Of a stretch of DNA of 64,000 bases, positions 16,326 to 51,910 are shown in pieces. The position numbers and the translations under genes were made by a program. Positions within the stretch are counted from its first letter, which is position 1. Each line of letters opens with the position of its first letter. The notes beneath the pieces are model-generated. The model searched no databases. It saw only the letters and a list, made by a program, of their open reading frames with translations, and was not told the DNA's origin. The DNA is from Mobula hypostoma (Eukaryota), in NCBI RefSeq assembly GCF_963921235.1, contig NC_086106.1, positions 20,832,001 through 20,896,000 on the forward strand. Reading direction: 5' to 3'.

Positions 16326-17594
16326 CAACACACATAAAAGTTGCTGGTGAACGCAGCAGGCCAGGCAGCATCTGTAGGAAGAGGTGCAGTCGACGTTTCA
16401 GGCCGAGACCCTTCGTCAGTACTAACTGAAGGAAGAGTGAGTAAGGGATTTGTAAGTTGGAGGGGGAGGGGGAGATCCAAAATGATAGGAGAAGACAGGA
16501 GGGGGAGGGATAGAGCCAAGAGCTGGACAGGTGATAGGCAAAAGGGGATACGAGAGGATCATGGGACAGGAGGTCCGGGAAGAAAGACAAGGGGGAGGGG
16601 ACCCAGAGGATGGGCAAGAGGTACATTCAGAGGGACAGAGGGAGAAAAAGGAGAGTGAGAGAAAGAATGTGTGCATAAAATAAGTAACAGATGGGGTACG
16701 AGGGGGAGGTGGCGCCTTAGCGGAAGTTAGAGAAGTCGATGTTCATGCCATCAGGTTGGAGGCTACACAGACGAAATATAAGGTGTTGTTCCTCCAACCT
16801 GAGTGTGGCTTCATCTTTACAGTAGTGGAGGCCGTGGATAGACATGTCAGAATGGGAATGGTATGTGGAATTAAAATGTGTGGCCACTGGGAAATCCTGC
16901 TTTCTCTGGCGCACAGAGCATGGATGTTCAGCAAAGCGGTCTCCCAGTCTGCGTCGGGTCTCGCCAATATATAAAATGCCACATCGCGAGCACCGGGCGC
17001 AGTATATCACCCCAGTCGACTCACAGGTGAAGTGTTGCCTCACCTGGAAGGACTGTTTGGGGCCCTGAATGGTGGTAAGGGAGGAAGTGTAAGGGCATGT
17101 GTAGCACTTGTTCCGCTTACACGGATAAGTGCCAGGAGGGAGATCAGTGGGGAGGGGTGGGAGGGACGAATGGACAAAGGCGTTGCGTAGGGAGCGATCC
17201 CTGCGGAATGCACAAAGAGGTGGGGAGGGAAAGATGTGCTTAGTGGTGGGATCCCGTTGGAGGTGGCGGAAGTTACAGAGAATAATATGTTGGACCCGGA
17301 GGCTGATGGGGTGGTAGGTGAGGACCAGGGGAACCCTGTTCCTGGTGGGCGGGAGGATGGAGTGAGAGCAGATGTACGTGAAATGGGGGAGATGCGTTTA
17401 AGAGCAGAGTTGATAGTGGAGGAAGGGAAGCCCCGTTCTTTAAAAATGGAAGACATCTACCTCGTCCTAGAATGAAAAGCCTCATCCTGAGAGCAGATGC
17501 GGCAGAGACGGAGGAATTACGAGAAGGGGATGGCGTTTTTGCAAGAGACGGGGTGAGAAGAGGAATAGTCCAGATAGCTGTGAGAGTCAGTAGG
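16326..17594 (-). mobile_element. Penelope-like element (RT tail + GIY-YIG endonuclease + pLTR) nested in the Gypsy integrase
   Basis: ORF 16717..17043 (GVIYCARCSRCGILYIGETRRRLGDRFAEH..EEQHLIFRL..QPDGMN). Identical 15-mer CTTATAAAATTCTTT at 16311-16325 and 17595-17609. Confidence 0.88.
16387..16424 (-). ncRNA. Minimal hammerhead-ribozyme motif in the Penelope pLTR
   Basis: TAGTA-CTGACGA-AGG(GTCTCGG)CCT-GAAACGTC/GACTG contains the CUGANGA and GAAA cores, stem II and a GUC cleavage triplet. The first stem-I pair is mismatched. Confidence 0.65.
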
Positions 17595-20016: not shown

Positions 20017-20857
20017 TGTAACATACCTCAAAGAGATCTTGTGACGTTTTTTGTGAGAATTATGTAATGGTCTTTTGGAGTCCACTGGTGTAATTTTCCC
20101 ACCGATGTGAGGTGACGTGATGACGTGTTCACCACGGGTATAAAGGGAAGACCTCTGGTGACGTAGTTACTTTTCCAGATAGAACGTTAATCAGAGTCTT
20201 CGTTTCCGTTGCGTATTTGTTTTATGACGCAGTTTTATTTTTAAAACGGAGTGTTACGTTCTATTGTAGGGTACAATAGCGCTAGATGGCAGTTTATACT
20301 TCCTCATAGATTTGTTGATGTACGTTTTCAGTAGTATTGGAGAGTGAAGACTTCATCGAAGTACAGGATATGAAGGATTAAGGGAAGTCGGGAATGTTCG
20401 GCAGTTTAATAAAGGATCGACGTAATTGAGACTTCGTTGGCGAAGTAGCGACCTGCATCGGAAATACCTCCGGTCGAATGAGCATGGTAGTTCATGCAAG
20501 GTTTGCTTTCTAGAATAAATTACGGTCAGTTGTTTAAAGCCGTTATTTCCTTCATCGTGAATCCTTTAGACAGAACAGGGATGTCGCGTCTATGAAGAAT
20601 TCCTTCTCCAGAGAAGTCTCTCCCAATTGAATGTATAAATCTGTTGGACTTTCGAATTTACCATTTTAAGAACTGTATTTGACTTTACTGCATGAAGAAC
20701 TAGTACCGAGTGACGATTTTTTTGAACAGCCGCATGGCGTTTAACTTCCGGTTAAAATTTTCGTTTGTTTTTTATTGTTTATCGGTGTTTAATAAATAGT
20801 TGGTCGTTTTTATATACCCTGTCTCGATTGATATTCATTGTTGCCGGTTACGTAACA
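20017..20857 (+). repeat. 3' LTR of the Gmr1-like element
   Basis: Starts TGTAAC directly after the purine tract GGAGGGAGG (20008-20016) and ends GTAACA. Contains a TATAAA and an AATAAA. Confidence 0.75.
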
Positions 20858-23800
20858 CACCCCATAATCTTTCTTAACTACCCTATCTACCTGTGAGGCA
20901 ATTTTCAGGGATCTATGGACACGTAAATCCAGATCCCTCGGCTCCTCCATTCTACCAAGCATCCTGCCATTTACCCTGTACCCTTCAAAGAGTGTGTCCT
21001 TCCCCAAAGTGTACCACCTCACACTTCTCCGGGTTGAACTCCATCTGCCTCTTGTCAGCCCACTTCTGCATTCTATCAATGGGTCTCGGCAATCTTCGAC
21101 AATCCTCTACACTATCCACAACACCACCAACCTTTGTGTCGTCTGCAAACTTGCCAACCCACCTTTCTACCCCCACATCCAGGTAATTAATAAAAAACAC
21201 GAAATCACAAAAGTTCCAGAACCGATCCTTGTGAGACAGCACTCGTTTCAACCCTCCAATCCGAATGTACTCCCTCCACTACGAACCTCTGCTTTCTGCA
21301 GGCGAGCCAATTCTAATCCTCCCGGTCAAACTTCCCTGCATCCCACGCCTTCTGACTTTCTGAATAAGCCTACCGTGTGGAATCTTGTCAAATGCCTTAC
21401 TAAAATCCATGTAGATTTAATCCACTGCACTACCCTAATCTATATGACTGGTCACCGCCTCAAAGAACTATATCAGGCTTGTTAGATACGATCTACCCTT
21501 TAAAAAGCCACGCCGACTATGCCTGATTAGACCATGATTCTTTAAATGCCCATGGATCCTATCTCTAACAATATTTTCCAACAGCTTTCCCACTACAGAC
21601 GAAAAACTCATTTGTCTATAATTACTTGGACTATCCGTACTACCTTTTTAGAACAAGGGGACAACATTCGCCTTCCTCCAATCCTCCGGTACCATTCCTG
21701 TGAACAACAAGGGCATGAGGATCCTGGCCAGAGACTCAGCAATATCTTTCCTCGCCTCGTGGGGCAGACTGGGGAATATTCTAATAAGGCCCTGGGGACT
21801 CATCCGTCCTAATGTATTTTAAAAACTCCAACACCTCCTCCCCTTAATTTTCAACATGCTCCAGAACCTCAACCTCACTCATATTGTCTTCACCTTCATC
21901 AACTCCCCTCTCATTGCTGAATACCGAAGATAAATATTCAGTGAGGACCTCGCTCACTTCCAAAACCTCCAGGCACATCTTCCCACCTTTGACTCTAATC
22001 GGTCCTCCCTTCACTCCTGTCAACATTTTGTTCTTCACAACGTATGAGGTTACTGCTCGAAATGTTGAGGGTTTTTTCCGTCTCCACAGATGCTACCTGA
22101 TCTGTTGAGATAACCTGAATTTTATTCAGGATTTCCAGTGTCTGCAGACTTGCAACATCCACACAAACAGAATTTCTTGTGCTAGTTTTAACCTAGGTTT
22201 ATACTTGTGAGGCTGGAGGTGCTGTAGAATTCCATAAGACCATAAGACGATAACACAAAAGAGCAGAAGTCAACCATTCAGGCCATCGAGTCTCCTCCGC
22301 CATTATATCATGAGCTGATCCATTCTCCTATTTAGTCCCACTCCCCGGCCTTCTCACCATAACCGTTGATGCCCTGGCTACTCAGATACCTACCAATCTC
22401 TGGCTTAAATACACCCAGTGACTTGACCTACACTGCTGCCCGTGGCAACAAATTCCATAGATTCACCACCGTCTGACTAAAAAAAAAAAAAAAAATCTCA
22501 TTTCTGTTCTGAATGGGCGCCCTTCAATCCTTAAGTCATGCCCTCTCGTACTAGACTCCCCCATCATGGGAAACAACTTTGCCAAATCCACTCTGTCCAT
22601 GTCGTTCAACATTCGAAATATTTCTATGAGGTCTCCCCTCATTCTTCTAAACTCCAAGGAATACAGTCCAAGAGCGGACAAACGTTCCTCTTCTGCTAAC
22701 ACTCTCATTCCAGGAATCATTCTAGTGAATATTCTCTGTACCCTCTCCAATGTCAGCACATCCTTTCTTAAATAAAGAGACCAAAACTGCCCACAGCACT
22801 CCAAGTTAGGTCTCACCAGCGCCTTATAGAGCCTCAACATCACATCCCTGCTCCTATACTCTATTCTTCCAGAAATGAATGCCAACATTGCATTCGCCTT
22901 CTTCAGTACCAACACAACCTGGCGGTAAATCTTAAGGGTATCGTGTACGAGGACTCACAAGTCCCGTTGCATCTCAGATCTTTGAATTCTTTCTCCATTT
23001 AAATAATACTATTCCCTTTCAATTCTTCTGCCAAAGTGCATAACCATACACTTTCCAACACTGTATTTCATTTGCCACTTCTTTGCCCATTCTTCCAATC
23101 TATCCAAGGCACTCTGCAGACTCTCTGTTTCCTCAGCACTACCGGCCCCTACCCCTATCTTCGTATCGTTAACAAACCTCGCCACAAAGCCATCTATTCC
23201 ATTATCCAAATCGTTGATGTACAATTTAAAAAAGAAGCGGCACCAACATGGACCACTGCGGAACACCACTGGTAACCGGCAGCCAACCAGAATAGGATCC
23301 CTTTATTCCCACACTTTGTTTCCTACCAATCAGCCAACACCCTATCCACGTATGTAACTTCCCGGTGATTCTATGGACACTTATCTTGTTAGGTAGCCTC
23401 ATGTGTGGCGCCTTGTAAAAGGCCTTCTGAAAATCCAAATATACAACATCCATTACATCTCCCTTGTCTTGCCTACAGGGGATTTCCTAAAAAAAATTGT
23501 GATAGGTTTGTCTGGCAGGATTTTCCTCTAAGGAATCCATGCTGAGTTCTGCCTATCTTGTTATATGCCTCCAGGTACTCTGTAAACTCATCCTTGACAG
23601 TCGACTACAACAACTTCCCAACCACCGTTGACAAGCTAACAGGTCTATAATTTCCTTTTTGCTTCCTTGCTCCCTTCTTAAATACCGGAGTGACTTTTGC
23701 AATTACCCAGTCCTCCGGAACCATGCCAGAATCTATCGACTTTTGAAAGATCATCGCTAATGCCTCAGCAATCTCCACAGCTACTTCCTTCAGAACACGA

Positions 23801-25390
23801 GGGTGCATTCCCTCTGGTCCGGAAGATTTATCTACCTTTAGACTTTGCAGTTTCCTGAGTACTATCTCTGCCGTAATTGTGACTGCGCACACTTCTGTTC
23901 CCTGCCACCCTTGAGTGTCCGGTATACTGCTGATATCTTCCTCAGTGAAGACTGATGCAAAATACTAGTTCAGTTCCTCCACCATCTCCTTATCTCCCAT
24001 TACAATTTCTCCAGGATCATTTTCTATCGGTCGTATATCTACAGTCACATATCTTTTACTCTTTATATCCATGAAAAAGCGTTCAGTATCCTATTTGATA
24101 TTATTTGCTAGCTCCCTTTCATAGTTAATCTTTTCTCTCTTAATCAATTTCTTAGTTTCCTTTTGTAAGGTTTTAAAAACTTCCCAATCCTCTGTATTCC
24201 CACTAATTTTTGTTTCCTTTTGTGCCCTCTCCTTTGCTTGAACTTTGCCTAAACCTTCTCTTGTCAACCACGGTTGCATCCTTTTTACATTCCAAAAATA
24301 TCTTCCTTTTTGGAATATACCTGTCTTGCACTTTCTTCACTTCTCGTATAAACTCCAGCCACTGCTACTTGTCGTCATCCCTGCCAGTGTCCCTTTCCAG
24401 TCAACTTTGGCCAGTTCCTCTCTCATGTCACTGTAATTTCCTTTACTCCACTGAAATACCGACACATCAGATTTCGGGATCACTTTTTCAAATTTCACAG
24501 TGAACTCAATCATGTTATGATCACTGCCTCCTAAGGGTTCCTTCGCGTCAATCTCTCTAATCACCTCCGGTTCTTTACACAATGCCCAGTCCAGTACAGC
24601 CGATCCCCTAGTGGGCTCAACAACAAGCTGTTCTAAAAAATGCCATCTCACAGATATTCTACAAATTCTCTCCCTTGAGCTCCAGTGCCGACCTGATTTT
24701 CCCAATCCACTTGCATGTTAAAATCCATCACAATTATTATAACACTGCCCTTCTGACAAACCTTTTCTATTTCATGTTGTAATTTGTAGTCCACTTCACT
24801 GCGGCTGTTTGGAGGCCGATAAACAACTGCAATCAGGGTCCTTTTGCCCCTACGATTTCTTAGCTCAACCCATAAAGATTCTGCACCTTCCTATCCTATA
24901 TCACCCCTTTCTAATGATTTAATATCATTTCTTACCAATACAGCCACGCCTCCCGCTCTGCCTACGTTTCTCTCCTTCCGATACACCGTGTATCCTTGAC
25001 GTTCACCTCCCAGAAACATGCGCCCTGTAGCCACGTCTCAGTGATGGCCACAATATCATACCGGCCAATCTGTAGCTGGACGACAAGATCATCCACCTTA
25101 TTCCTTATGCTGCGTTGCATTTAAGTATAACACCTTAAGACCAGTTTTTGGTACGTTTCGCTTTGAATTCCCTGCAACATCATTGCACTGCAACTCATCC
25201 CAATGGCTACAAATTTGCCCCATCACCTGTCTGTCTTTCCTGACATCTTTACTGCTCACTATATTAGATTTATTTCTGTTTTCCTCTTCCTTCGTTCTGT
25301 CATCCCGGTTCCCATCCCCCTGCCAAATTAATTTAAACCCCCCCTAACAACTCTACTAAACTTTCCCGCCAAGTCAGTGACAACAAGCTG
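20858..25390 (-). mobile_element. Composite CR1-clade LINE fragments
   Basis: ORFs 20985..21251 (KFADDTKVGG), 22463..22915, 23009..23269, 23605..23892 and 24337..24705 (endonuclease LGGSDHNMIEF). Confidence 0.85.
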
Positions 25391-27000: not shown

Positions 27001-27479
27001 TGATGACATAATAAAATACTATTCAATAATAAATGAGTTATTCCCAATAAAAAAAAAACTCACTTACTCTGCACAGATGCCAGCTGAGCGCTGGCACCAA
27101 ATATTAGCTTCCTTCTACACAGCAAGAACGAGTTAGGTAAAAAGTTGCTAATTTACGAGAAATCCCGAATACAATAATGTCATTAACGGTCTTTTAGTGA
27201 TGTTTTGTTATCAACATTTGTCAGTGAAATTAAAAACGTTGCACTAACTGATAAGGTAATTGTCAGTTGAAATGCTGTAACTTTGCGCCATAGGTAGAGT
27301 TGTCTTCGGTTGGGAGCAGAAAATGTCTTCAAACATGAACATAGGCAATTGAAGCTTACATACATTTCCGGCGGCATAGTAGACTGCCAATCCTGATCTT
27401 AACAGTCGTGTCAAAGTAAATCCTACAACTACCATCCTTCCAGGAACACCCCAGTGAACCAAAGGAACATTTATAAAAA

Positions 27480-31004: not shown

Positions 31005-32899
31005 CCTCAAAAACATTATATAATCTATGAGGCACGACCTCCGACAAAAAAGGTCATCATTACTATTTAGATAACTCAGCCTTGGATGAAAATGACTGTG
31101 ATTCGTCACTACATTAACCATCCAGCAATAAGGACAACCCTTGGCCTCCTACAATATCGGCAGATTTAAAAATCGCAACCTATGCAGCTCTTCTTATCAC
31201 TGACACACAACCTCCTCCCTTTTCCCGCACGTATTAGCAGCACAATTTCCAGCATATTGTCTTGTTGAATGAGAAACACATTGGCAATCCGCCAGATTTT
31301 CGATATGTCTAGAGAAACCCCCAATTTCACTCGCCTACTTTGTATTCCCTATGTATTGCAAGTACGTGCTTCATCGCTTCAGTACAATTTTCAACACGAA
31401 ACCCCACATCACTGGAAGGTGCTGGTATGTTTTCCGCATTCCTGAACAGCACACTTTACCGCTATATAAATCCGAAGAATTCTGTTTAGTATTGAGTCCT
31501 TCACGTGCCTCATTACTTTGAACAATATCCTCATGTGGAAACCCAGGATCCTCATATCCTCCTTTATTACTCAGCCTTTTCCCTCCATGTTGGTTCAGCA
31601 TTCATTTCGCATCCTGAGCACTCATTTTGTTTCAATTCTGCAACCCGATTTTCTTTCTGTCTACAATCAATTTGATCTCATAATGAATTGCACTGCCCAT
31701 TTTTATACGCAAGGTCAAATGAACACAAAGCTGTACAGGAACTCAATTTCTTGAACAATTAAATTGACGTTGTCAATAATAATAAAATACTTAGTGGAAA
31801 CATGACACAAATGTTTAATACAATTACACTTTAAAAACAAAGGATAAAATATCTCGAAATGTTCAGCAGAGCAGACAATGTGTAGATATGGAACGAGCCT
31901 TATATCCATTAAGTGAACACAGTTTCTCTTTCAACAGATACTGACCGACCTGATGAGTGTTCCTATTATGTTCTGTTTTTGAATTATTATTTTAAGAGTA
32001 AACCATTTAGCTATAGAATAACAGGCATGTGATATTCCTACCTCGGGGAACACTGTGAAAATCGGTGACAGGGTCATTAATTAAAAAAACAAACAAAAAT
32101 AAAAAACACCGGATAAATCATAGATATTTTTATTTGTGAAAGGCTACATCAGTAAAAACAGAAATAATATATTTCTGTTGAAAATCAGCTGTGGTAACGA
32201 TAGGTTATTTCCATTGTTGAGAATGCAGTGCAGATTCATCAGAATATAGACTGGATGAGAAGAGTTTAATTTCATCACTTCACTTATACTCTATAAATTC
32301 AATGTTCGTCACATGGAACTTGTACCTAGACGAGGTGTGGAATCAGATATAGCGAATTATTTTAATGGGCATTTAGTCAAGGACGTAAGTAGGCAAGCCA
32401 TCGCGAAAACGCAGTCTTTACTGCAGCAAGTTTTATTCATGCAGATTGGTCAATGTATTGGAATGGACTTGGGCAGTAGTAGGTCGATTTCCTGCTGTAC
32501 ACGACTACGACTCTATCCATAGATATTCACGTGTAGTACAAGAGCCAAGGTTTGAAATGTGCAGTATGTGAGCGGGAAACGGAGTGGACTCTTGAAATTG
32601 TTGGAACTGCTCTTGCAATGGAATTGATTGGCCGAATAGACTTTTGTAATATTGTACGAACATGTGAGGAATCGCGAAATAACCCTCAATTGTGAGGTTT
32701 GACAATGAATATCAGACCAATGAATTATATTGAATTGATGCACACTGTTGTTCGCAGTGCCGTACAGCACAACCGTAGTTGTGATTATTGATTTTAACAT
32801 TCACCATGCTGCATTCACACTACCTGTGCCCATCTACTTTGGCCAAGTGATCAGATACAAGTAAAATAACAACATTGAAACTAATATTGATTTACTCAC

Positions 32900-32950
32900 T
32901 CGATTGTACGGTCAATTAAATCCCATCATACAACACATTAACCCAACACT
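32900..32950 (-). pseudogene. J-like 3' end with phase-1 GT donor
   Basis: TTG TAT GAT GGG ATT TAA TTG ACC GTA CAA TCG A|GTGAGT (LYDGI*LTVQS), four substitutions from FGDGIKLTVQS. No convincing RSS. Confidence 0.3.
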
Positions 32951-33303: not shown

Positions 33304-34086
33304 TCAGCTGTGCAACATTAATAATCATAGTATTCATTCGAATAGTCCGAAAGTTCCTAGAATCTGATAAATAAGTTTGTTCTGCTCTGCCCAGACCTCA
33401 GTGTATACCAGTCTGAAATGAGAAAAAAAAATGGTGGTGAAGCATCGGAGTCATTCTGAAAGCTCTTCAAGGAATCCTTCTGTCAAATGCTCTCGTATAT
33501 TATGTTAGTTATGACTCAGTAGCAAGCATAATACTCTAAATATAGATTTGTATTTAGTATGAAATGTCAACTTTGTGTCATTGAGATCAAAGTCATGGAT
33601 AACAAAGGATAATAATAAAATGCAAACGTTGTGTACTTATCAACGAGAGCTTATGTTTGGCAAGTTTATCAGCGGGTCTAAACGTACAGAAAGCAAACCC
33701 AGACTTATTGATGAAGGTTTGAGCATTCATGACCTAGGATCTAGTTTCAACGAAGCCTGCAGGGGTATACACAGGTCTCACACACGTATTGTTAAATTGT
33801 TGAAATGTTGCTAAATTACTTCCAATGGTTTTATTTACTGATCAGTGGAACTATGCTCATCAGCACATAGACGAGTCCGTTCTAGATTTGCAGAATTGTT
33901 GAACACATTCTACGTCATTCCTCGAAACATTATCACTTGAAATACTGGATACCAAAATGCAGAACTCGACTGCCCATCACAGTTCTTATCTCTTTCCAAA
34001 CCAAATCGATATTTTTCAATTATCTAATATAATATTCTGCTGGGTTAAGCATACAACTAGAAAAAAAAATAAGTTTGAGCACTTAC

Positions 34087-34152
34087 TCGGTTCATCGATC
34101 AGCATAGTTGGATTTCTAAAAATGTGCTACGCTCCCTTATTGCTACACAATT
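34087..34152 (-). pseudogene. TCR-delta-like pseudo-J segment
   Basis: AATTGTG heptamer (CACAATT on +, 34146-34152), then SNKGA*HIFRNPTMLIDEP and A|GTAAGT. The phase-1 GAA CCx A|gtaagt ending is typical of delta/alpha J segments. Nonamer weak; one in-frame TAG. Confidence 0.5.
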
Positions 34153-34384
34153 ATATTTTGTTGCAATGTCTTTCAGGATTTCCTCCACATATCCAGGTAA
34201 CTAGCTGTCTTGACTGACAAAGCCTGTCAGGAAAGCATGATTGTCACTACTAGTCAGCGATCCATGTATTAGGGTCAAAATTGGAGATACCTAATGGAAT
34301 ATAATGGGGAAAAATGGTTTGTTTGCTAATGGTGCTTGATAGTAATCGATTTGCCCTTCGGACAACGAGGTCCTGAGGCTGAGA

Positions 34385-34460
34385 ATTTAATGTTTGGCCG
34401 AGAATGGCATGTCAACTACTGTGCCTGCTACACACAGTGTTAAGTGGCAATGCAAAAGCT
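34385..34460 (-). other. D segment (Db) with 5' 12-RSS and 3' 23-RSS
   Basis: Minus strand: AGCTTTTGC-12-CACTGTG | TGTAGCAGG | CACAGTA-23-ACATTAAAT. Confidence 0.7.
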
Positions 34461-34762
34461 CTCTGTTCGTTGCTACCCGCAGGGACACGAGACCATAGGC
34501 TCCACAGCACAGCGGATTCAAAAGAGAGAGAGAGAAAAAAAACATTACGAAGCGTATCACATAAACTGTTGAGGTAGTGGGCATGCGATACGGGCCTTTT
34601 CTCTCCAACGGAATGCTTTTCAGTGTTCACAAAACAGGCTGCATGCAGTCATTATAGAACAGTGCAGAATGAGCTCAAGATTATGAGGAAAACCACAAGA
34701 TTTCCGCAGCTAAGCGGCAGTTGAAGCTAAGCAGTGTGGATGTCAATGTATTGCAACTTGGA

Positions 34763-34842
34763 GGTTAATGTACGGCAGCTGATGGCATTTCAATTACTGT
34801 GCATATCGTAGTCCCACAGTGAAATAAGGCAGCACAAAAACC
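34763..34842 (-). other. D segment (Da) with perfect 5' 12-RSS and 3' 23-RSS
   Basis: Minus strand: GGTTTTTGT-12-CACTGTG | GGACTACGATATG | CACAGTA-23-ACATTAACC. Confidence 0.85.
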
Positions 34843-35049
34843 TTTCATTAGTCACATGATCATACACGTAGCGCTTTCAAGGCTGATAACACGTCCTGAA
34901 GAGCTTCATATGACTGTTACGAAATGAAATCAAAACTACAGAAGAGACAGTGAGAGTAGTTGTCCAGAATCGGTGTCAATGACAAGTTCTTTAAGAGACT
35001 ACGCTATCGAATGGTTATAGGCAACACAGCTCTTCATGTGTGCTCCAAT

Positions 35050-35640
35050 GTTCATGATCGATTCAACCCCATTATCCGAACCCCTTTCGGTTTATTAAAT
35101 GTCCAGAGAGTTAGCGAATTCAGCCCTGGCTACTTAATTGCCTGCTAAGGCCTTGCAGTCGAATGGTTGAGCAGAATTTGCAAAATCAACAATGTTCCTA
35201 GGAATGGAATTTCTGCCGATCCCAATACTGCACATCGGAGCCCGAAATCTGAGGCGGTGCCTCGATTTCGAGATTACTCAGCCACAGGAGAATGCTGTCC
35301 TATGGCGAATATTGTCTGCCTTAAAAGAGTAACTGTCCTAATCTCCACTGACGCTTGTTCATTCATACACATCAGTTGATTGGCGATTATTCCTCATGAA
35401 CTGAGCTCAACTACTCACAATAATTCGGATTAAAAAAATATGTGACCTTCACTGCACTATCCTGAATTCAAAGTTCCCTTTGCGGATTGCAGGATATATA
35501 TTCTACTCCATCGTTCTCTTTCCGAAATTGTGTTGCGATTTTCTTCCATTACCATCCATTTATCACAAAGTTGAGAACATACTAATCCTGGCTTACTGGG
35601 CATGTCTTCCCTCTCTGGAGTTGGTGATTGGTAGATTATT
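35050..35640 (-). pseudogene. Displaced 3' part of cluster B constant region (CH1 end plus CH2-like remnant)
   Basis: Patchy identity to 2200-2600 (GACTTTGA; CCGAA(A)TTATTGTGA; CAA.GTTCCT; CAGAGA.TTAGC; CTTAATT.CC). GAAG|GTCACA donor-like site near 35447. Confidence 0.35.
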
Positions 35641-36399
35641 TTTTAAAAAGTTCATTTTTTCGTGTTTTTACTCTCTAACTGTACATATTCACTTTGCTAT
35701 AAGACAACCATTTCTACAGCTTATTTCTACGGTGAACCTGGTTTACTCCATCCCCCACTATCCCATTTATTTTCGCAAATCTTATTTTGACTCGTTCCAA
35801 ATTCTCATGAAGGCTCCTTGAAATAAAACGTTAAAACGCCTTTCGCTTTTGCTATTGATATGTTCTGACCTCGTGAGTATTTCTAGATTTATTTTTGAAA
35901 TTCCAGCAACTACGTTTTGTTTTATGACAACGAGATGTTTCCCGGCGGCGATAAGAACGCAAACATTAAATTCCATGTACAAACCCTTCTGAGCTTAATA
36001 GCCTCATCGTTAGGAAATGAGGTGTAGTTATGTAAACAGAATATAAAACAGTATAGGTAGAAGCATATTCAGCCCCTCCGATACCCGTAGCAATCATGAT
36101 GATATTTTTAAGTAGCATATCTGCTTACATTCCCCCACCATTCCCTGCATGATGAATGATCTATAGTAGTCTCTTAAAATGTGCCATCGTATTCAGTTTC
36201 AGAATTTCTCTGAAATTTCCAGTCACTTTACACTCTCCGCATTTTTAAATGTCTCATGTAACAGCTTTAGTATCCTTCCTCTCATCATACATCTATGTGG
36301 CCGAAGACTTCGTGGTTTCAGCTTGGAATAAACACTCTAAATATCTTCCTTATCATTTTCTCTCATTTTATATATTCTACCAGGTCAGCTCTCAGCCTG

Positions 36400-36840
36400 T
36401 AGTGTTCAAGATAAATAAATCTTAGTGTTTCTAAACTCCGCTGATACACTCCGAACCAGATAACATATCGGTGACCTTCCCTGTGCCATATCGAACGCAT
36501 CACATCCTTACTAAAATGTGACGACGACAACGAGAATGACACAAAATACTCAGAATACAATCGAGGAAACATTTTATATATAAGGCCATAAGTGAGAGGC
36601 ACAGAATTATGCCATTTGGCGCAAATAGGCTGCTCCGCCATTTCGTTATGGCTAATCGAAATTTTCTCTCAGCTACAATCTACTGCCTTCTCCCCTTATC
36701 ACTTCATGCCCTGACAAATCAAGACTTTTTTCAAACTCAGCCTTAAATAGAAACAAAAACGTGACCTCCAGAACTGGCTGTAGCAAACAATTCCACAGAT
36801 TCACCACCACATACTAAGTACTAAATAAATAAATACATAA

Positions 36841-36873
<33 letters not shown>

Positions 36874-39189
36874 CAGATACTGAAGAGATACCTCCTCATT
36901 TCCGTTCTAAAATGACGCCCTTATATTCTGAGGCCGTGCCCTTTGGTCATCAGAGGAAACATCTTCTTCACATTCCTCTACCAAGGTTTTTCTCCATTGT
37001 ATAGTTTCCAACGAGATCATTCCTCATTCGGTTAAATTCGATTGAATACATGGCCAGAACCATCAGACTGTCTACATATGGCAAGACCTTCAGTTCTGTA
37101 ATCATTTTTGTGAATCTCATTTGATTCCTCTATGTTTTCAGCCCATCCTTTCTAAGATAATGGACGCAATTGTGCTCACCGTATTCTAAGAGATGCTTCA
37201 CCAGTGCTTTATAACGTTTCAACTTTACTTCGTTTATTTTATATACTAGTACTCTTGAAATGAATGCTAACATTACATTTGCCTTCCTCACCACAAACTC
37301 AACCTGCAAATTAGTATGTAGCATTCGATCATAGACAGTCATGTGTTTACGCCTCTGGTGGACTGTGTCCTCTACAGGACGCAAGCCTGGACGGGAGGAT
37401 TTGAGGAACCGGCAATGCAGCTGGTTCCCCTCCCCACGTCGCTGATGTCGTCCAAGGGAATTGCAGGCTCTGATATAGTTTGCTCTAATGTCGTCGCAGA
37501 GGTTGAAATTATAAACAGGATCAGACTGCCATAGGGTACCCAGCGCCGGATTTTAAAATCTGAGGCTCCCTCTGCTAAGAGAGATACCGTTCCAAGGTTG
37601 ACGAACCCCACCTGCCTGCAATAATTAATTTTGAGACACAAGTGATCCGCCTTTGCCCCATATTTTTCCCCATATTCTGTCAGTAGAAACAGTTCCGTCG
37701 GGCCTAGTAGCTAAGCCACACGAGGAGGCCGAGAGTTGGACTTGGCTGTCAGAGGCTGTTGGAGTCGCACGTGAATTGGAGCACTTTATCGGAAGTGGGA
37801 ACTTATACCCTCAACCACCCCCGGTTATGACAAACTTCGGAACCTGCAAATCAGATGTTGAGTGCACCTGCTCAGGGAATCACAGGTCCCTTTGCAACTC
37901 GCATTGTTTTTTGTATTTTCTATCTATTTAGAAAATAATCAATCCTTTCATTTCCTCCAGCAAAGTACATGACCATGCGCTTCCCGACACAATATTGCAT
38001 CTGCAATTTCTTTGCCCATTCGCCTAATCTGATTAAGTCCTGCTGCATCCCCTCTGCTTCCTCGTAACACCTGCTCCTCCAGCTACCTTCACATCTACTG
38101 CAGATATTTCAACAACACTATCTATTTCATCATCTAACTTATTGACAGATAACGTTAAAATAACCCATATCAACTCTGATCCCTGTGAAACGACACTAGT
38201 CACCGGCAGCCAGCCGGAAAAGGCTTACTTTATTCCCACTGCTTGCCTCCTGCCAATCAGCCACGGATTTATCAATGCTAATATCTTTCATGTAAAATTT
38301 TGGGCCTATAACTTGTTAACCAGCCTCATGTGCAGCGCCTTGTCAAAGGCCTTCTGAAACTGTAAGTTCACAACGTCAACTGATTCTCTTTTGTCTCTCC
38401 TGCTCAATAATTCTTCAAATACATTCAACAAATTTGTCAGGCAAGATTTTCCCTTAAGTAAACAATGCTGACAAAGTCCTATTTTGTCATGTGCCTTAAA
38501 GTACCCTGAGACCACATCCTTAAAAATCGACTACAACATTTTGCGAACCACTGTGGTCCCAGTAACTGGCCTATCGTATCTCTTCTTTTGCCTCCCTCCC
38601 TTCTTGAAGAGAGGGGTGACATTTGCAATGTTCCACTCTTCCGGAACCATTCCAGGATCTAATGCTTTTTGAAATCTCATTCCAAATGCTTCCAGAATCT
38701 CTTCAGCCTCCTCTTAAAGAACTCTGTGATGTATGCCATCTGGTCCAGGCGATCTAGCAACCTTCTTCCCTTTCTGTATCCCAAGAACCTCTTCTCTGGT
38801 TATGGTAAATTCACACACTTCATGTTCCCTGGAACATCCATCATACAGCCAATATCTTCCACAGACGAGACTGATGCAAAATACTTATCCACTTTGTCCG
38901 CCCTTTCATTTTCCCCAATTACTACCTCTCCAGCATTCTTTTCCAGCTGACGGATCTACATTCTTGCCTGTCTATTACACATTCGTTATCTGAAGAAACG
39001 TTTACTCTTTAATATTTTTGGCTAGCTTAATTTTTTAATTCCATATATAACTGCTTAGTGTTTTTTTAGTTGCCTTCTGCTTGTATTTCAAAGTTTCCAA
39101 TCCTCCAACTTCCCACAAATTTTGCTCTATTGCATGCCTAAACTTTGGTTTTACGTTCGCTGTGACTGCTCTTGCTAGCCACAGTTGTG
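36400..39189 (-). mobile_element. CR1-clade LINE fragments (with a TAAA/TAGA microsatellite at about 36822-36873 and an unclassified repeat at about 37340-37900)
   Basis: ORFs 37130..37384 and 38306..38515 (KGKSCLTNLL..FQKAFDK). Confidence 0.7.
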
Positions 39190-39345
39190 TCATCTGTATG
39201 GATCAGAATAATACTATACAAGACACCTATCAAACTGACTGAAGTGTGCTGGGGTGAAGATTGGAGCTGGCACAAGGCAGATCTGCAGTGTGCCGCTTTG
39301 TTAGCGGCTGTGATTGCAGATATGTGGATTGCGAGGCTGCTGGTG
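39190..39345 (-). pseudogene. 5' half of IgW-like CH1 pseudo-exon (cluster B), cut by CR1
   Basis: TPAASQSTYLQSQPLTKRHTADLPCASSNLHPSTLQSV then TGA at Cys+14 (TGG expected). Paralogous to 2750-2855. Confidence 0.45.
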
Positions 39346-40054
39346 TGGAGAGGAGAACCTGAGCTGAGTGTACCAGCTTAGAGTAAATTTGTAATGAGGT
39401 AGCATTTTGGTATTGTAGAAAATGATCGATTGTCAATCATAAAGTCGGGTGAGACTGTCTGATTTTAGTCTGTGTTGTAGTAAGAAGATAAAATATCGGA
39501 TTGCATGAACAACAGCTGGGTAATATTATTTATGCATAATTTGGCATCTAGTATTTGCTGATAAAGTAGGCTGTGTTGCCATTCAAAGGGTAGGATATTT
39601 GGAGGCAAACGTATTGATGGTGCAGTAGTCGTAAACAGTCTTGCAGGGTAAGATTGAGAGATCTCCTTCCTTGATGGACATCAGTAAAACTGAAAGTTCA
39701 TCATTTCTAATTACTAGATTTTAAGAAAACACAAATTATTTAAATGCTGTACATCGCATCGCAGATCCAAATCTAACGCAGATCACTGTTGACTAAGTAT
39801 AAAAATGATAGTTTTGTTGTGGTGGTATCCGTGGGCTGGTCACTTTATCTCTGCACTAATCATTTATATCCAACCTTGTGTTTGTACATTGGATAACTGT
39901 GACCATAGTGTCTTGACAAATATTTCTCGTTCAGTAACATCACCAGAGCAGATAGTCTGATTGTTCTCACCTTGAAGTTTGTGGATTCTGTTGTGTGCAG
40001 ATTGTCTCCACATTCCCTAACAACAGCAGGGCTGTATATTGATTGGAGCAGATT

Positions 40055-40645
40055 ATGAAGACACGCAGTCCTCTTTTATTGTCATTTAGTAATGCATGCA
40101 TTAAGAAATGATACAATATTTCCTCCGGTGTGATATCACAAAAACACAGGACGGATCAAGACTGAAGAAACTAACAAAAACACATAATTATAACATATAG
40201 TGACAACAGTGCAATAATACCATAACTTGACGAAGAACAGCCCATGAGCACATTAAAAAGTTCAACGTCTCTCAAATGTCCCACATCTCACGCAGAAGGA
40301 AGAAACACTCTCCCTGCCATGCCCTACCACAGTCCGACTCTGAGTCGTCCTAAAACTTCGAGCCTCCGATCAGCTTTCCGAACGATTGGATCTCATTCTC
40401 AGTCGCCAACAGCAGGCAGAACCAAGGATTTTGAGGCCTTCCCTCTGGAAGATTCTTGATCGCGCAGTATCAACAGCAGCGAACCTGCGTTACGGAAATT
40501 TCTCCAGATGTTCCTCGGTGCCTTCACGTCTGTCTCCATCAAATCAGAATTGTCCACGGCCCCTATTTAACGGATACGATATCATTTTCTCCGGAGGGCT
40601 GCGCACGTGCGGGGCGCTGCTATCTCACCTCCCGCCTTATTGCCT
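40055..40645 (-). mobile_element. Unclassified interspersed repeat (copy of 14545-15245)
   Basis: Shares the blocks listed for the first copy. Absent from the orthologous position in cluster A. Confidence 0.6.
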
Positions 40646-41253
40646 GTGATGTGCTCGGGACACCATGAAGTCTGTTATGTATACGTCAACAATTTATCCA
40701 ACAATGACTTTTACTGAATCACCAGGAACTCTGTAAATGAAGGGAAACACTTGTTAAACAAATCCATTAGGTGATGGAGGCGGGCAACACATTAGAGAGT
40801 TTAATCCTGGGATATTGCATATGCCTTTGCTGTATCCTATCAGGGTCCTTAAGCCGGAAATTACATGATGCGACTGACACCTACCTGTGTCCTCGGGATA
40901 TTGAGCCATCAACCATTCCCGCAGATCATGTCTTAATCCGATTATCTTCAACGTGAATGCAGTGGACAGTGAAACCTGATCCCAATAACGTGACACTGTA
41001 GAAATCCATTGCTGTCATTGACATAGATTAAGTGTAACTGTAATGAAAAGCTTCGCCACTAACCATGAGTTCTGTCGGTGCTGAGTATGCAGATTTCAAC
41101 CAAACAGTCAGCTCACGCTGCAAAATCGTCTGGTGTCAATGCGCATCAAGTGACAAGATCCGACATCATTCCCCTGCAGCCTGTCCCTAGTCTGTCGGCA
41201 GTTCACTGGTCAGCTGGGGTATGTATCCTTGTACTGTTCCTGAGCTCTAGCCA

Positions 41254-41335
41254 ACCTCAGTTAGTTCGGGGAGGTTCTTTAATGTGCTCTAAATATCACA
41301 GAGCTTTCATGTGATTCACAGCATTCGCCAACACC
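41254..41335 (-). pseudogene. Degenerate JH-like segment with 23-RSS (cluster B)
   Basis: On +: CACAGAG (41297-41303)-23-GCCAACACC. The 41-nt coding remnant TATTTAGAGCACATTAAAGAACCTCCCCGAACTAACTGAG|GT lacks an intact WGxG. Confidence 0.45.
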
Positions 41336-41754
41336 GTAAATTAATAAAATACAAACGGGTCAGGATAGAATTCTGAATATGGACTTAACTAAGTTCACTT
41401 TGAACGTGTTTTTTCTCTGTCCAATATGCAAGGTAGTTATACCGCTCAGTTTCCCCAGTCAGTTAATGTAGTAACTTCACTTGCCTGTCACATGCAATAA
41501 TCTCAACACGTGTGAACATGATGCCTTTCCGGACCGGCAACAGCTGCAACCTGGATTTCCATCCCATACACCAAGCTTGGCACTTCCCGGCGTGTGGATT
41601 ACAGAGGCTGCTTTAGTGTTTGCCATCCACCAGAAACACAGTCTAATTGTTTTGGGCGTTTCATTCCCTAGAAGTGGCAATATGGCATAGTAGTCGATCA
41701 GGCTTTCTTCCTGACAAAGCTAAAGAAATTTGGACTGTCCCCTAAAACCTTCAC

Positions 41755-42298
41755 TATTTTTTTTAGATGCACCGTAGAAAGCATTCTTCAAGCTGGTATG
41801 GAAGTTGTCCTGTCGAAGACCGAAAGAAGCTGCAGAAGATAATGAACACGGCGTTGCAGATCACACAAACCAATCTTGCGTCCTTGTACTCACTTTACAC
41901 CACACGCTGTCGGAGCAGTGCTGCCAGAATAATCAAGGACACGACCCACTCAGCCAACACAATTTTCGTCCCACTTCCCTCCGGGAGAAGGCTCAGGAGC
42001 TTGAAAACTCGTACGGACAGATTAGGGAACAGCTTCTTTCCAACTGTGATAAGTCTGCTGAAAGGATCCTGACCGGGATCTGGGCCGTGCACTCCAAATA
42101 TCCTGATACGCCTCTAGTATTTTTTTTGCACTACCTTGCTTTCCATTTTCTACTTTCTATTTATGATTGATAATTTTTTTTTAAATATTTACTATCGATT
42201 TGTACTCCAGAGAGCGGGAAGAGCAGAATCAAATATCGCTGTGATGATTGTACTTTTTATTTACATTTGTTTGGCGACAATAAGGTATAAAGTATGAT
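41755..42298 (+). mobile_element. Rex1/Babar-like LINE 3' fragment inserted between D2 and J
   Basis: ORF 41767..42072 (WYGSC..DRKKLQ..LPSGRRLRSLKTRTDRLGNSFFP). Confidence 0.75.
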
Positions 42299-42364
42299 TT
42301 GACTCTGGAAAGCAGTAACGCGGAGATTAAGTAGTCTGCCTCCGCTGCTCGTCTGTCGGGACCC

Positions 42365-42428
42365 AGATTCTGTTCAGCTCCCCACCGCCGTGATCCGTAT
42401 CACGGTGCTTCACCGCAGTTCACAAACC
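42365..42428 (-). other. DH segment with 12/12 RSS (D2 type) (cluster B)
   Basis: Minus strand: GGTTTGTGA-12-CACCGTG | ATACGGAT | CACGGCG-12-ACAGAATCT. Confidence 0.72.
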
Positions 42429-42659
42429 GCCTTTATCCCATCCAGCCCGAAACAAGTTGAATCCCAGAGTCAGTCAGCTGACACCTGAAACTTCCGGCCC
42501 CTCACTTTTGTGCCTGGATGTCCCACGCAATGACTCTCGATCTTGGCCATCCTTGTCCTGTCATGGAGTGGATATGATCAAACGGGACATTTCACTGGGC
42601 TTCCATTGAGAGCTGTTCCTTGGTTGTACCGTTCGCTTCCAAACAGATCGTCAGTGGAA

Positions 42660-42731
42660 CCTTTATCTCTTCCTAGATTATGCACTCAAAACTGATTGAT
42701 GGGTCCCAGTGTAACGTCCGGCGTAAACACC
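42660..42731 (-). other. Possible degenerate D1 (12/23) site (cluster B)
   Basis: CCCAGTG-11-GTAAACACC on +; the opposite-side heptamer is poor. Conserved with 5009-5084. Confidence 0.25.
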
Positions 42732-43003
42732 CGAGTAGCTCAATTTAGATATTTTTGTTGTTTCGTAGCATCTGGGCGATGGCTGGCACCAAAACAAGTA
42801 TGCAGGTGTCACCATACCCAAGGACACTTGGCTCCGAACTGCAGTATGATGTAATCCCGTGAACCCCTCGGTCCATCCATCCAGCACTTCCTTTCTCACA
42901 ACATGCCTTCCCTTGCGTGGACGACCGACCCTGTCCAGAAATATTGGGATCGAGCTCTGGCGATCACTCTTGCCCTTTCCCTCAAGGGCAAGTTCTCTCT
43001 GTG

Positions 43004-43042
43004 GGTTTTTGTCTCGGCCCAGTCCCAGTTTCTTTTACTGTG
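43004..43042 (-). promoter_or_regulatory. 23-RSS of V2
   Basis: CACAGTA + 23-nt AAAGAAACTGGGACTGGGCCGAG + ACAAAAACC (consensus nonamer). Confidence 0.92.
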
Positions 43043-43494
43043 CCTCTCGCACAGTAATAGGTGCCCCTGTCGTCTAGTCTCAGGTTGCTCATTTGTAGAT
43101 AAAAGTTGCTGTTTCTCTTGGAAGCAGTGAACCGGCTCTCGACTCCAGGCGCGTAATTCTAGTTATATTGATCATAATAACATACCAACGATTCAGGCCC
43201 TATCCTAGAGACCTGTTTCACCCAGCACATGTAGTAGTCGTTGATATTGAAACCACTAACTGCACAGGACAGTCTGTGCGACTCTCCGAGCTTTGCCACT
43301 TCTGACTCGAGTTGTTTCAGCTGGACGTCGGACCGCACGTCTGACAATAAATAGAGAGTAGAAATTAATAAAATGTTGCGGCAACATAGTTTCCAATGCT
43401 CAGAAAAGCCGCCTAACCCAGATGGGTAGCAGGCCGCTGGACACGTTCCTGCCAGACAAGACAAGAGAAGGCAGACATAAAGAACGACATCCAT
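43043..43494 (-). pseudogene. IGHV: IgW-type heavy-chain V segment V2, disabled
   Basis: Leader 43494-43449 MDVVLYVCLLLSCLAG; 108-nt intron with donor GA. V exon 43340-43043 reads [95 protein letters not shown] (TAG at 43161-43159). Confidence 0.93.
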
Positions 43495-49274: not shown

Positions 49275-51910
49275 TTGACTGCATAAGTATTCACACCCTT
49301 CCGGTCACTGTATTGTAGATGCTACTTTGGCTGCAATTACAGCTTTGAGTCTGTGTTCATAGGATTCTATCAGCTTTGCAAAACTGGACACCGCAATTCT
49401 GCCCATTCTTCCTGACAAAACTGCGCAAGCTCTGTCAGATTAAATGGGGATATTGACTGCACAGCACGTTTCAAATTGAGTCACAAATTCTGAATAGGGC
49501 TGAGGTTTGGACTCTGACTTGGCCACTCCAATACATTAACATTGTTGATTTCTATGTGATTCCTTTGTACCTTTGGCTTTATTCTTAAGGTCATTGTCAT
49601 GCTTAAAACAAATCTCCCAAGTCGCATTGCTCTTGTGTAATAAATCAGGTAGTTCGTTCTATTTTACTCCACTAATTTTACGTGCAACCTAAACAAGCCA
49701 TGCAGGGCCTGCTGCAGTGAAGCATCCACACAACATGATGAGCCAGTCCCATGCTTCTGTCAAAATGAGGTGCTGGGAACGGACCCAAATGCAAGACACA
49801 GACACTGCAGTACAAGTCCAGGACTTGACTAGAGTAGGGACTTGACAGGATGCAGCCAAGGAGAAGGGACAAGAACGGAGACTAGGGCTTTGACCACAAG
49901 CCAGATACTGGACAAAGACCCAGGACCTGGGTCTTGCCTCGGGCTTGGCCTCCTGAGCCAAGCATGGACAAGACATGACTGCAGGACTGGAGGCTGGGGT
50001 CTTGAGGCTTGAGGCTTGAAGATAGGCTTGTGGTCTTGAGGCTTGAAGCTTGGAGGCAGGCTTGGGGTCTTGGTTTTAAGGTTTGAGCTTGGAGATAGGC
50101 TGGGGTATTGGTCTTGAGGCTTGAGCTTGGAGACTGGCTAGGGTCTTGGTGTTGAAGCTTAGCTTGGAGATAGGCTGGGGTCTTGGTCTTGAGGCTTGAG
50201 CTTGGAGACAGGCTGCGGTCTTGGTCTTGGGGCTTGAGCTTTGAGACAGGCTGCGGTCTTGGTCTTGAGGCTTGAGCTTGGAGACAGGCTGGGGTCTTGG
50301 TCTTGAGGCCTGCAGGCTGGGTTCTTGGTCATGAGTCCTGCAGGGTGGGGTCTTGGTCTTGAGGCTTGAGGTTAGGGTCTTGGTCTAGCGGCTTGAGGCT
50401 GGGGTCTTGGTCTTCTAGCTTGAGGATGGGGTCTTGGTCTTCAGGCTTGAGTTTGGAGACAGGTTGAGGGTCCTTGAGGCTTGGGTCTAGATTACTTCGA
50501 GACTTGCGTATGGACTCTGAGCCAGAGACTGGCCAAGGAACCAGAACCTGGGACTTGACTCGGGCTCGGACTCCAGAACTAAGAGAGGACAAGACGAGGC
50601 TACTGGACTGGACATGGCTTGGGTGTGGAACTCCTGGGTAGGGCGAGTCAAGAGGACTGGCAAAGGCACATGGACAGGACTCGGATAAGACTGGACTAGG
50701 CGCGGACTTGACGAGGGCCTTCAGGAGCACGAAGCCTTGGAATAGAAGAGACAGGAGCACGGAACACAGAGTCTGAACCCCTCCTTTGGAACAAGACGTA
50801 GGGCCGGGACTCATACACAGAACACTGAACATGAAAAGACGGATCCCAACCCCAAGGTGGAGGGAAAAGGCCGGACCCACCTAGCCAAGTCGTGGACACA
50901 GAGACAGATGCCAACACTAGATAGCGGCAAACGGCCGGACCTATCTAGCGAAGGCGTGGATACCGAGAGTCAATTCCACACAACGAAAGACAGTTCCTTA
51001 TCTTGACCTTACAAGGCTCCGGTCTTGATCCCGCGGTAAACCTCAGCGGTACAGGCGGGGTATCCAGGGTAGGTGAGCAAGCAGAGTGTCGGGTGAGGGG
51101 AGAAAAGACAGGGAGGGGAAAAGGAAAATCCAGCAGGGAATCCCTGTTTTGCAGAGGTATGGATGTCTCAGCCCCAGTAGGATAAAAATGTGCCCACAAC
51201 AGAAACTGGCGAAATCCAGAAACCCCGAAACAAGGATCCAACGACCGGACCGTGAAGCCCCAACACGGAATTCACGGACCGGACTATGACATCTTCATTG
51301 TAGTGCTGATGTGTTTTAAGTGATGTACGATATTTGGCTTACGATTAAGCATAGCGTTTCGAATGATGATCATAAAGCTCAATTATGGTTTCATCAGACC
51401 ATAGAGAACTCTTCCTGCTGCCTCCAGAGTATGCCTCATGCGTTCTGACAAATTCTAGTCAAGATTGCTTTCGATCGTTTGTTTATAACAGTGGCTTTCC
51501 CTTTGCCATTCACCCGTAAAGGTGAGACTGGTCAAGCATCCAAGCAACAGTTCTTGTTTGTGCAGTCTCCCCATCTCAGCTATTGAAGCTTGTCACTCCT
51601 CCAGATTTGCCATAGGTCTCTTGGTGGCAACACTCACTCGTTCTTCTTCGTACACGGTCTTTGCGGACGTACTGATCCAGACAGATTTACAACTTTGCAA
51701 TATTATTTCTATCTCTTGATAATTGACTTAATTCATGGACTTGGAAATTTTCTGGTATCTATCTGCTGAATTGTGGTTTTCAATAACCTTTTCGTGAAGT
51801 TACTTATAGTGGTCTTTTCTGCATGGTGTACTTTGTCCCAGGATACGAACTCACCAGAGTTGAACCTTCAAATACCGGTGCATAATGGCATGCAAATGTT
51901 TGGGCATCCC
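49275..51910 (-). mobile_element. Second Tc1-like transposon, split by an LTR insertion
   Basis: Minus strand reads HDND..VLEWPSQSPNLSPIQNL (49330-49620). The N-terminal half resumes at 51292. Confidence 0.75.
49758..51291 (-). mobile_element. Solo LTR of the CCAGCCTCAAG-minisatellite family
   Basis: TGTCA...TGACA termini; flanks GCTTC / TCTTC (5-bp TSD with one mismatch). Internal G-rich array at about 49985-50480. Confidence 0.78.

Follow-up and report, generated by a model that had tools for sequence, protein, structure and literature searches.

A decayed module of antibody-type V and T cell receptor delta-type D and J segments in Mobula hypostoma

Described mixtures of antibody and T cell receptor segments

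[quoted passage not shown] Within that locus, an antibody heavy-chain-type V gene carrying a recombination signal sequence (RSS) with a 23-base spacer (23-RSS) lies upstream of the delta diversity (D) segments, with which its signal is compatible (PMC12227049). In nurse shark, 'trans-rearrangements' of Ig V genes to TCR-delta were described by Criscitiello et al. 2010, as cited in PMC12227049 and PMC5931798. Here we describe a stretch of 64,000 nucleotides of Mobula hypostoma (NC_086106.1:20,832,001-20,896,000, the window), in which the relevant genes all lie on the minus strand. It holds a module in which an antibody-type V pseudogene, V2, and the remains of an Ig cluster are followed by a cassette of two TCR-delta-type D segments, Da and Db, and a decayed joining (J) segment, J1, with two further pseudo-J segments, J2 and J3, behind it. 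The window very probably belongs to the V-gene region of a cartilaginous-fish TCR alpha/delta locus, and the cassette to a decayed tandem-duplicate module within it. Such a place fits the published linkage (PMC12227049). The stretch is present in DNA runs of the source species and, at roughly 95% identity, in those of a related species.

V2 resembles TAILV in being an IgH-like V gene within the TCR-delta locus. It differs in being a pseudogene that keeps Ig-cluster remains, namely a D segment with 12-base spacers on both sides (12/12) and intron homology, and in that the module V genes are nearer to those of the linked IgW-like clusters than to the other full-length VH genes of the locus and seem to form no clearly separate lineage. 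As they are cited, the nurse shark joints also bring an IgM- or IgW-type V to TCR-delta D, J and constant (C) sequences; here the parts lie in cis on one strand, so that any joint would be an ordinary deletion, and the combination is known from the arrangement of the DNA. The cassette also recalls NAR-TCR, in which a V gene with its own D and J lies within the V region of the shark or ray TCR-delta locus, but it has no NAR-type V, no leaderless supporting V behind J, two D segments instead of one, and J segments of alpha/delta type. In marsupials and monotremes (TCR-mu) and in galliform birds (the second TCR-delta locus), VH-like V genes are likewise combined with delta-like D and J segments in repeated clusters, but those clusters each have a constant gene and are expressed, whereas the modules here are without C. 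Tandem duplication of D–J(–C) blocks inside a TCR locus is also seen in TCR-beta; the TCR-beta duplicates have their own C and are functional, whereas copies of the window type have no C, are spread across the V region, have an antibody-type V each, and have decayed J segments.

Anatomy of the module

The module reads as two halves on the minus strand. The first half comprises the following features; positions here and below are those of the window unless given in Mb, k (kilobases) or full contig coordinates.

43449-43494, minus strand: V2 leader exon (MDVVLYVCLLLSCLAG), ATG at 43494, read against paralogues
43043-43340, minus strand: V2 V exon, a VH-type pseudogene ending YYCARG, from its translation and V-set matches to both halves
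43004-43042, minus strand: V2 23-RSS, CACAGTA-23-ACAAAAACC, intact and consensus-like, read directly
42365-42428, minus strand: D0, a relic Ig-type D (ATACGGAT) with 12-base spacers on both sides, from reading and conservation
41704-42295, no strand assigned: high-copy repeat insertion (about 600 bp) following D0, from genome search
40641-41650, minus strand: stretch collinear with the V-to-C intron region (D, J, start of the J–C intron) of IgW-like clusters, from genome search
40050-40640, no strand assigned: second high-copy repeat insertion, from genome search
39205-40040, minus strand: further IgW-cluster-like J–C intron homology, 68-73% identical to the next stretch of the same clusters
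34843-36807, minus strand: non-coding stretch upstream of Da, common to the cassettes, from alignment

V2 proved to be of antibody type, with its nearest relatives among the V genes of IgW-like clusters, as a preliminary description of this DNA had proposed. Its intact sister at 20,772k is a V-set domain whose 60 best matches in the PDB are all antibody VH domains or nanobodies; a protein database search with this sister V returned no candidates. The relatives closest to the 20,772k V outside the modules lie at 18.94, 19.06 and 19.58 Mb, with amino-acid identities of 67-72%, each upstream of long runs of C1-set exons, whereas module-type V genes share only 54-61% amino-acid identity with the full-length antibody-type V genes at 20.41-20.64 Mb. 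We infer the label IgW for the reference clusters from the long runs of C1-set exon matches behind each cluster V.

The V2 23-RSS is intact. It is compatible with the 5' signal of Da, about 8.2 kb downstream, and, as had been noted, could be joined to it under the 12/23 rule. The gene itself is broken. It has an in-frame TAG at 43159-43161, in complementarity-determining region 2 (CDR2), and has lost its leader donor, reading CAG then GAACGT (GA for GT) where the paralogues with an intact donor, c772 and c715, read CAG then GTATGT. Five V genes of the module family were read: those at 20,772k and 20,638k are intact, that at 20,715k is without the conserved Trp, and V2 and V1, the next V gene downstream, are broken. 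In an independent run that we guessed to be RNA from another sample of the same species (X9), a 267-base contig matched 43051-43317 exactly, TAG included. V2 may be transcribed despite its lesions. This one low-depth contig covers the V2 exon only, leaving the intron, the RSS and the D–J region uncovered, and is too weak a basis for claiming rearranged transcripts.

Behind V2 lie the remains of an Ig cluster. D0 is found 0.6 kb beyond the V2 23-RSS, with Da about 7.5 kb further on, and its signals are GGTTTGTGA-12-CACCGTG and CACGGCG-12-ACAGAATCT. It is conserved behind eight antibody-type V genes of the region, and 12/12 is the form of the last D in an Ig cluster; V2 and D0 thus pair a VH 23-RSS with an Ig-type D within about 1 kb, as in such a cluster. 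Once the two high-copy repeats are set aside, about 4 kb downstream of V2 is collinear with IgW-like clusters, at 72-75% identity to the stretches behind their V genes. In particular, 40641-41650 is 73-75% identical to sites 1.1-3.5 kb behind the cluster V at 18.39, 18.56, 18.63, 18.93, 19.06, 19.35, 19.58 and 19.70 Mb, and 39205-40040 also matches 20,413,459-800 and 20,405,824-6,193, two sites that come after the proximal V and before the D-delta segments of the best-preserved cassette at 20.40 Mb (hereafter the main block). A decayed heavy-chain J (JH) may lie near 40890-40960, where no copy keeps WGxGT. Both repeats are young. The repeat at 41,704-42,295 had 5166 first-look candidates genome-wide, 86-88% identity among the 39 copies listed and very high depth in all runs; that at 40,050-40,640 had 7221 first-look candidates and 81-88% identity among the 39 copies listed. 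Two genome searches were swamped by these repeats and were repeated on trimmed stretches.

In a run of the related species (X5), a DNA contig joins the last coding base of a V2-type gene (43043) into D0 (42396), with four D bases trimmed and three letters added. Its depth was about 58, as against about 10-12 in single-copy flanks, and unjoined contigs were also present. The contig is a V–D coding joint and probably comes from one or more VD copies joined in the germline of that species.

No constant exons were found in this half. None of the 20 open reading frames (ORFs) around the unit had an Ig-domain match in Pfam, and none of the 150 best genome matches to C1-set exons fell between 19.82 and 21.85 Mb. 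The preliminary description had placed C remnants about 200 bp upstream of Da; however, all six copies of the cassette, the main block included, share the final 420 bp ahead of Da, which are therefore not C remnants.

The second half of the module consists of the D and J segments.

34763-34842, minus strand: Da including both RSS, from reading and paralogue alignment
34815-34842, minus strand: Da 5' 12-RSS, GGTTTTTGT-12-CACTGTG, read directly
34802-34814, minus strand: Da core GGACTACGATATG, read directly
34763-34801, minus strand: Da 3' 23-RSS, CACAGTA-23-ACATTAACC, read directly
34385-34460, minus strand: Db including both RSS, from reading and paralogue alignment
34433-34460, minus strand: Db 5' 12-RSS, AGCTTTTGC-12-CACTGTG, read directly
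34424-34432, minus strand: Db core TGTAGCAGG, read directly
34385-34423, minus strand: Db 3' 23-RSS, CACAGTA-23-ACATTAAAT, read directly
34081-34171, minus strand: pseudo-J1 with a damaged 12-RSS and a GTAAGT donor, from direct reading and paralogues
34087-34145, minus strand: J1 coding sequence, SNKGA*HIFRNPTMLIDEP, ending GAA CCG A then GTAAGT, read directly
32894-32933, minus strand: pseudo-J2, LYDGI*LTVQS then GTGAGT, with a stop and a 21-base deletion, by homology to the main copy
27062-27122, minus strand: pseudo-J3, RKLIFGASAQLASVQ then GTAAGT, with FGAS and other changes, by homology to the copy in cluster A, the neighbouring module on the left

Direct reading bore out Da and Db with their 12/23 signals where they had first been seen. 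Both have the make-up of TCR-delta D segments, with a 12-RSS on the 5' side, a 23-RSS on the 3' side and CAC/GTG heptamer ends. Their cores are 9-13 bases long (those of the main block being GGGACTGGGGTAC and TACGGGACG), and the nonamers of their signals recur unchanged in the main block. When the window copy is compared with the others, the four D signals show 89-94% identity in their heptamer and nonamer cores and 63-72% in the flanks. In the lineage of the window module, 3 of 64 RSS-core sites have changed against 61 of 526 flank sites (Fisher p=0.06), while J1 has changed at 12 of 59 sites; in the main-block lineage 1 of 64 RSS-core sites has changed (p=0.006). For the window module, relaxed selection accounts for the data as well as retained function does. 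D segments need no reading frame, and on sequence grounds Da and Db look like the only parts of the module that are still usable. Only this copy has a JH-like 'WTTTLTVSS', at about 34,930 and shortly upstream of Da; it recurs in no paralogue, and we rejected it as a chance match.

J1 was found where it had been reported, with its GTAAGT donor, but without the intact 12-RSS. The heptamer is two bases short and the nonamer matches at four of nine positions, whereas the paralogues have a clear 12-RSS (GGATTTTGT-12-CTCTGTG in the 20.40 Mb copy). J1 has an in-frame stop and reads FRNP where paralogues read FGNG, keeping only its end and donor; it therefore falls short of a TCR alpha/delta J, with FGxG, an open frame, a VxP end and a phase-1 GT donor. 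In the alignment its paralogues read KLIFANGTTLIVEP, KLILGNATTLIVEP and KLTFGNGTTLIVEP. Judged by sequence form, this family has the FGxGTxLxVxP pattern of TCR alpha/delta J segments, and the window J1 is assigned to it through its paralogues. J2 also has a stop codon where the main copy reads QKLIFGGGTQLTVQP, and J3 is the counterpart of a cluster A copy that reads FGAGTQLRVVP. All three J segments are without FGxG.

The order D–D–J thus follows TCR-delta logic, as had been recognized, with serial 12/23 D segments and, in the best paralogue, a J with a 12-RSS. The suggestion of a working cassette failed, given the stop codon and lost leader donor of V2 and the decay of all three local J segments. 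Every part of the module that depends on a reading frame or on splicing is broken, and the module is therefore unable to make a chain alone.

Paralogous copies and position in the locus

A genome search with the kilobase that spans D–D–J found five further copies, every one of them on this contig and its minus strand, at 67-75% identity.

20,402.7k, 20,692.5k, 20,708k, 20,759k and 20,826k, minus strand: cassette paralogues, from genome search

Because the block recurs in this way, chance does not account for Da, Db, J1 and V2. Preservation is best in the copy at 20.40 Mb, which has intact J1 and J2 and is followed by further delta-type J segments and then by the J-alpha-type array. The entire module was compared by BLAST with 264 kb of the locus; the modules at 20.71/20.708 Mb and 20.77/20.759 Mb keep its order of V, the Ig relic, D–D–J1, J2 and J3, as cluster A does in part. 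Homologues of J2 and J3 are present in every module and in the main block; all J segments of the modules are decayed, by loss of FGxG, by stop codons or, in cluster A, by change of the GT donors to GG or CT. The tree of cassettes is star-like, with Kimura two-parameter (K2P) distances of 0.25-0.39, and only the 20.708 and 20.759 Mb copies are close (0.105), which indicates that the composite unit was tandemly duplicated long ago. A divergence of 22-30% makes assembly duplicates an unlikely source of the copies.

It had been asked whether cluster A has the same cassette left of the window. A cassette is present there, at 20,826k, but its D–D piece has been lost. At 20,826,300-20,826,360 of the contig, about 5.65 kb left of the window, the Da–Db segment is missing, and the heptamer of the Da 5' signal (GGTTTTTGT-12-CACCGTG) directly adjoins that of what remains of the Db 3' signal (CACAGCC-12-ACATTAACT). 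This looks like a chromosomal signal joint from germline RAG excision of D–D, followed by the loss of 11 bases of spacer. Both J segments of this cassette keep FGxG and have lost the GT donor. V1, the V gene of the cluster A module (window 5403-5853, minus strand), has a frameshift between framework region 2 and CDR2 and a GG leader donor, and its 23-RSS, CACAGTG-23-ACGAAAACC, is intact.

The position of the window was read from the J segments. We scanned the 3.5-Gb genome for the pattern FGxGTxLxVxP and obtained 49 minus-strand matches, all on this contig, compared with 4 and 5 for reversed-pattern controls. Of these, 43 fall within 20,204,161-20,302,155 and form a J-alpha-type array; four are delta-type J segments at 20,380-20,402k, and two belong to the cluster A cassette just left of the window. 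The 20.40 Mb cassette lies about 100 kb upstream of this array of at least 43 TCR-alpha-type J segments. With its intact J1 and J2 at the head of the J series, we take it as the working D-delta/J-delta block. The window lies about 465 kb upstream of that block in the same orientation, and the array is 560-660 kb downstream of the window cassette on the same strand; the window therefore sits in the V part of a TCR alpha/delta locus. Da and Db are accordingly upstream of both the delta-type J segments (20.38-20.40 Mb) and the J-alpha-type array (20.20-20.30 Mb), as D-delta segments should be.

This settles the choice among the three options of the preliminary description in favour of the first, that the cassette is part of the TCR alpha/delta locus. 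The more general proposal of an Ig/TCR hybrid region also stands, since an antibody-type V lies beside a TCR-delta-type D–D–J in that locus. The observations that might have overturned it did not appear: the J family is FGxGTxLxVxP and of no Ig or NAR type, the contig has TCR genes, and paralogous cassettes exist.

Several observations weigh on the other side. The label of main block depends on the intact J segments and the position beside the J array, with C-delta inferred, and J1 of this block reads FANG, not FGNG. The Pfam model DUF1968 (TCR-alpha C) had no match over the genome; this model is probably centred on mammals, and we do not take the null as absence of C-alpha. In mammals DAD1 adjoins TRAC, whereas here DAD1 is on another contig (C1) from the J-alpha array and gives no help from synteny. 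Finally, the difference between RSS cores and flanks in the window module, at p=0.06, is suggestive only.

Other content of the surroundings was also recorded. Some 38 kb downstream of the 20,692k cassette, which is truncated, lie two more delta-type J segments, at 20,653,8xx (YKLTFGGGTQVTVLP, with a good donor and a 12-RSS) and 20,654,4xx (MIFGGGIRLTVLP), with no adjoining D segments seen. An antibody-type V at window 63781-64000 and beyond is on the plus strand, opposite to all others; it has one TAA and is 50% identical to the module V genes. Long low-complexity tandem repeats at 10100-14300 and 49700-50900 have Pro/Ser/Gln/Ala-rich translations (PQASRPQPPASSLKT) in several frames and look satellite-like, not like genes. 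Transposon content on the minus strand occupies 59993-61885, 16720-17397 and 20800-24900 and includes a broken element resembling a long interspersed nuclear element (LINE). The window also has a 631-residue open reverse-transcriptase ORF, LINE-like by eye, and a 226-residue ORF with a weak GIY-YIG match just under the Pfam cut-off (E 2.6e-4; 21.6 against 22.6 bits), possibly Penelope-like.

Origin of the module and its possible use

We propose that the module is a tandemly duplicated unit of two halves. The first would be the 5' half of an IgW-like antibody cluster minus its constant exons, made up of the leader, V2, the relic 12/12 D and part of the J–C intron, and the second a copy of a TCR-delta D–D–J1–J2–J3 block. 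At least five such cassettes lie upstream of the best-preserved copy at 20.40 Mb. The sequence shows the anatomy of the module, its paralogy, its location and its lesions.

The foremost competing explanation is that the module still contributes to the repertoire. Da and Db would serve as extra distal D-delta segments, joined to an upstream V and to D or J of the main block, yielding a longer and more diverse CDR3-delta for which the local J segments are dispensable. The 12/23 rule permits each step: the 23-RSS of an upstream V could join the 5' 12-RSS of a D, and the 3' 23-RSS of that D could join the 12-RSS of a main-block D or J, with about 465 kb being deleted. At most, TCR-delta chains built with the main J and C would then borrow D sequence from the module. 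The state of the signals is consistent with such use, because all four keep their CAC/GTG ends and the main-block nonamers, their cores are better conserved than their flanks, and J1 has decayed faster than the RSS cores in the same lineage. However, the lineage-specific test is not significant, cluster A is without D–D altogether, the 20,692k copy has a broken Da 3' heptamer (TACAGCA), and neutral decay spares short elements more easily than coding segments. We therefore regard Da and Db as possible D donors under the 12/23 rule only tentatively, with the balance well on the side of disuse. The more demanding combination, in which an IgW 5' half was fused to a delta D–J block and amplified at least fivefold and the D–D cassettes still act as distal D-delta donors, seems to us somewhat more doubtful still.

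It is very unlikely that the module is a self-contained second TCR-delta-like cluster (V–D–D–J–C), like TCR-mu or the second VH-delta locus of birds, with its C further downstream or missed. The V–D–D–J order on a single strand, repeated in tandem, is cluster-like, but the 28 kb from J1 to the next V consists of J2, J3, transposon debris and satellite-like repeats and has no Ig-domain ORF. No C exon was found between J3 and the next V in the sequence of three modules, better-preserved sister modules have no C exons within 9 kb, and all local J segments are decayed. The suggestion of a separate second VH-delta locus gives way to one of several old tandem duplicates at the proximal end of a single TCR-delta locus.

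A doubly rearranging cassette of NAR-TCR type, in which a first V–D–J is spliced onto a leaderless supporting V-delta, had also been considered and is marginally less probable again. J1 does keep a GTAAGT donor, but V2 is a full VH with CDR2 and not of NAR type, and no V of that type is present; downstream, V1 comes next, at a distance of 28 kb and with its own leader, and no leaderless V with a splice acceptor was seen within a few kb of the J segments. A V-like piece at 20,687k, 5 kb behind the 20,692k cassette and the only other one seen close to any cassette, was tried as a supporting V and rejected as a pseudogene with a stop codon and no RSS.

That the D and J are segments of an Ig class, be it IgW, IgM or IgNAR, has next to no probability and is refuted as far as sequence allows: V2 and the relic D0 are Ig-derived and the contig has many IgH clusters, but Ig J segments have a 23-RSS and a VTV end, whereas this J family is FGxGTxLxVxP with a 12-RSS and its best copy heads the J-alpha array, and the Ig-type D of the unit is D0, a separate element with 12/12 signals.

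We favour the decayed tandem duplicate in the V part of the TCR alpha/delta locus. The cassette adds one more case to a known theme, antibody V genes in the service of TCR-delta (TAILV, VH-delta and Ig–TCR chimeras), and is not a new kind of receptor gene. Antibody-type V genes in the TCR-delta locus and IgH clusters linked to TCR alpha/delta have already been described in sharks and rays; the structural addition made here is that the antibody-derived V units still show their origin, through a relic Ig D and intron homology. Less familiar is the copying of a delta D–D–J–J–J block with an antibody-derived V unit several times, followed by uneven decay in which the J and V segments are dead and the D signals are kept. 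If the cassettes do act as distal D donors, delta chains could contain three or four D segments, local V-to-D joining of the cluster kind would take place in a translocon locus, and the cassettes would be a living intermediate between two layouts of antigen-receptor genes, 'cluster' and 'translocon'. TCR-delta junctional diversity in this animal would then draw on D segments scattered across half a megabase; should the spare ones go unused, the modules would be dated fossils of the shuffling of Ig and TCR segments.

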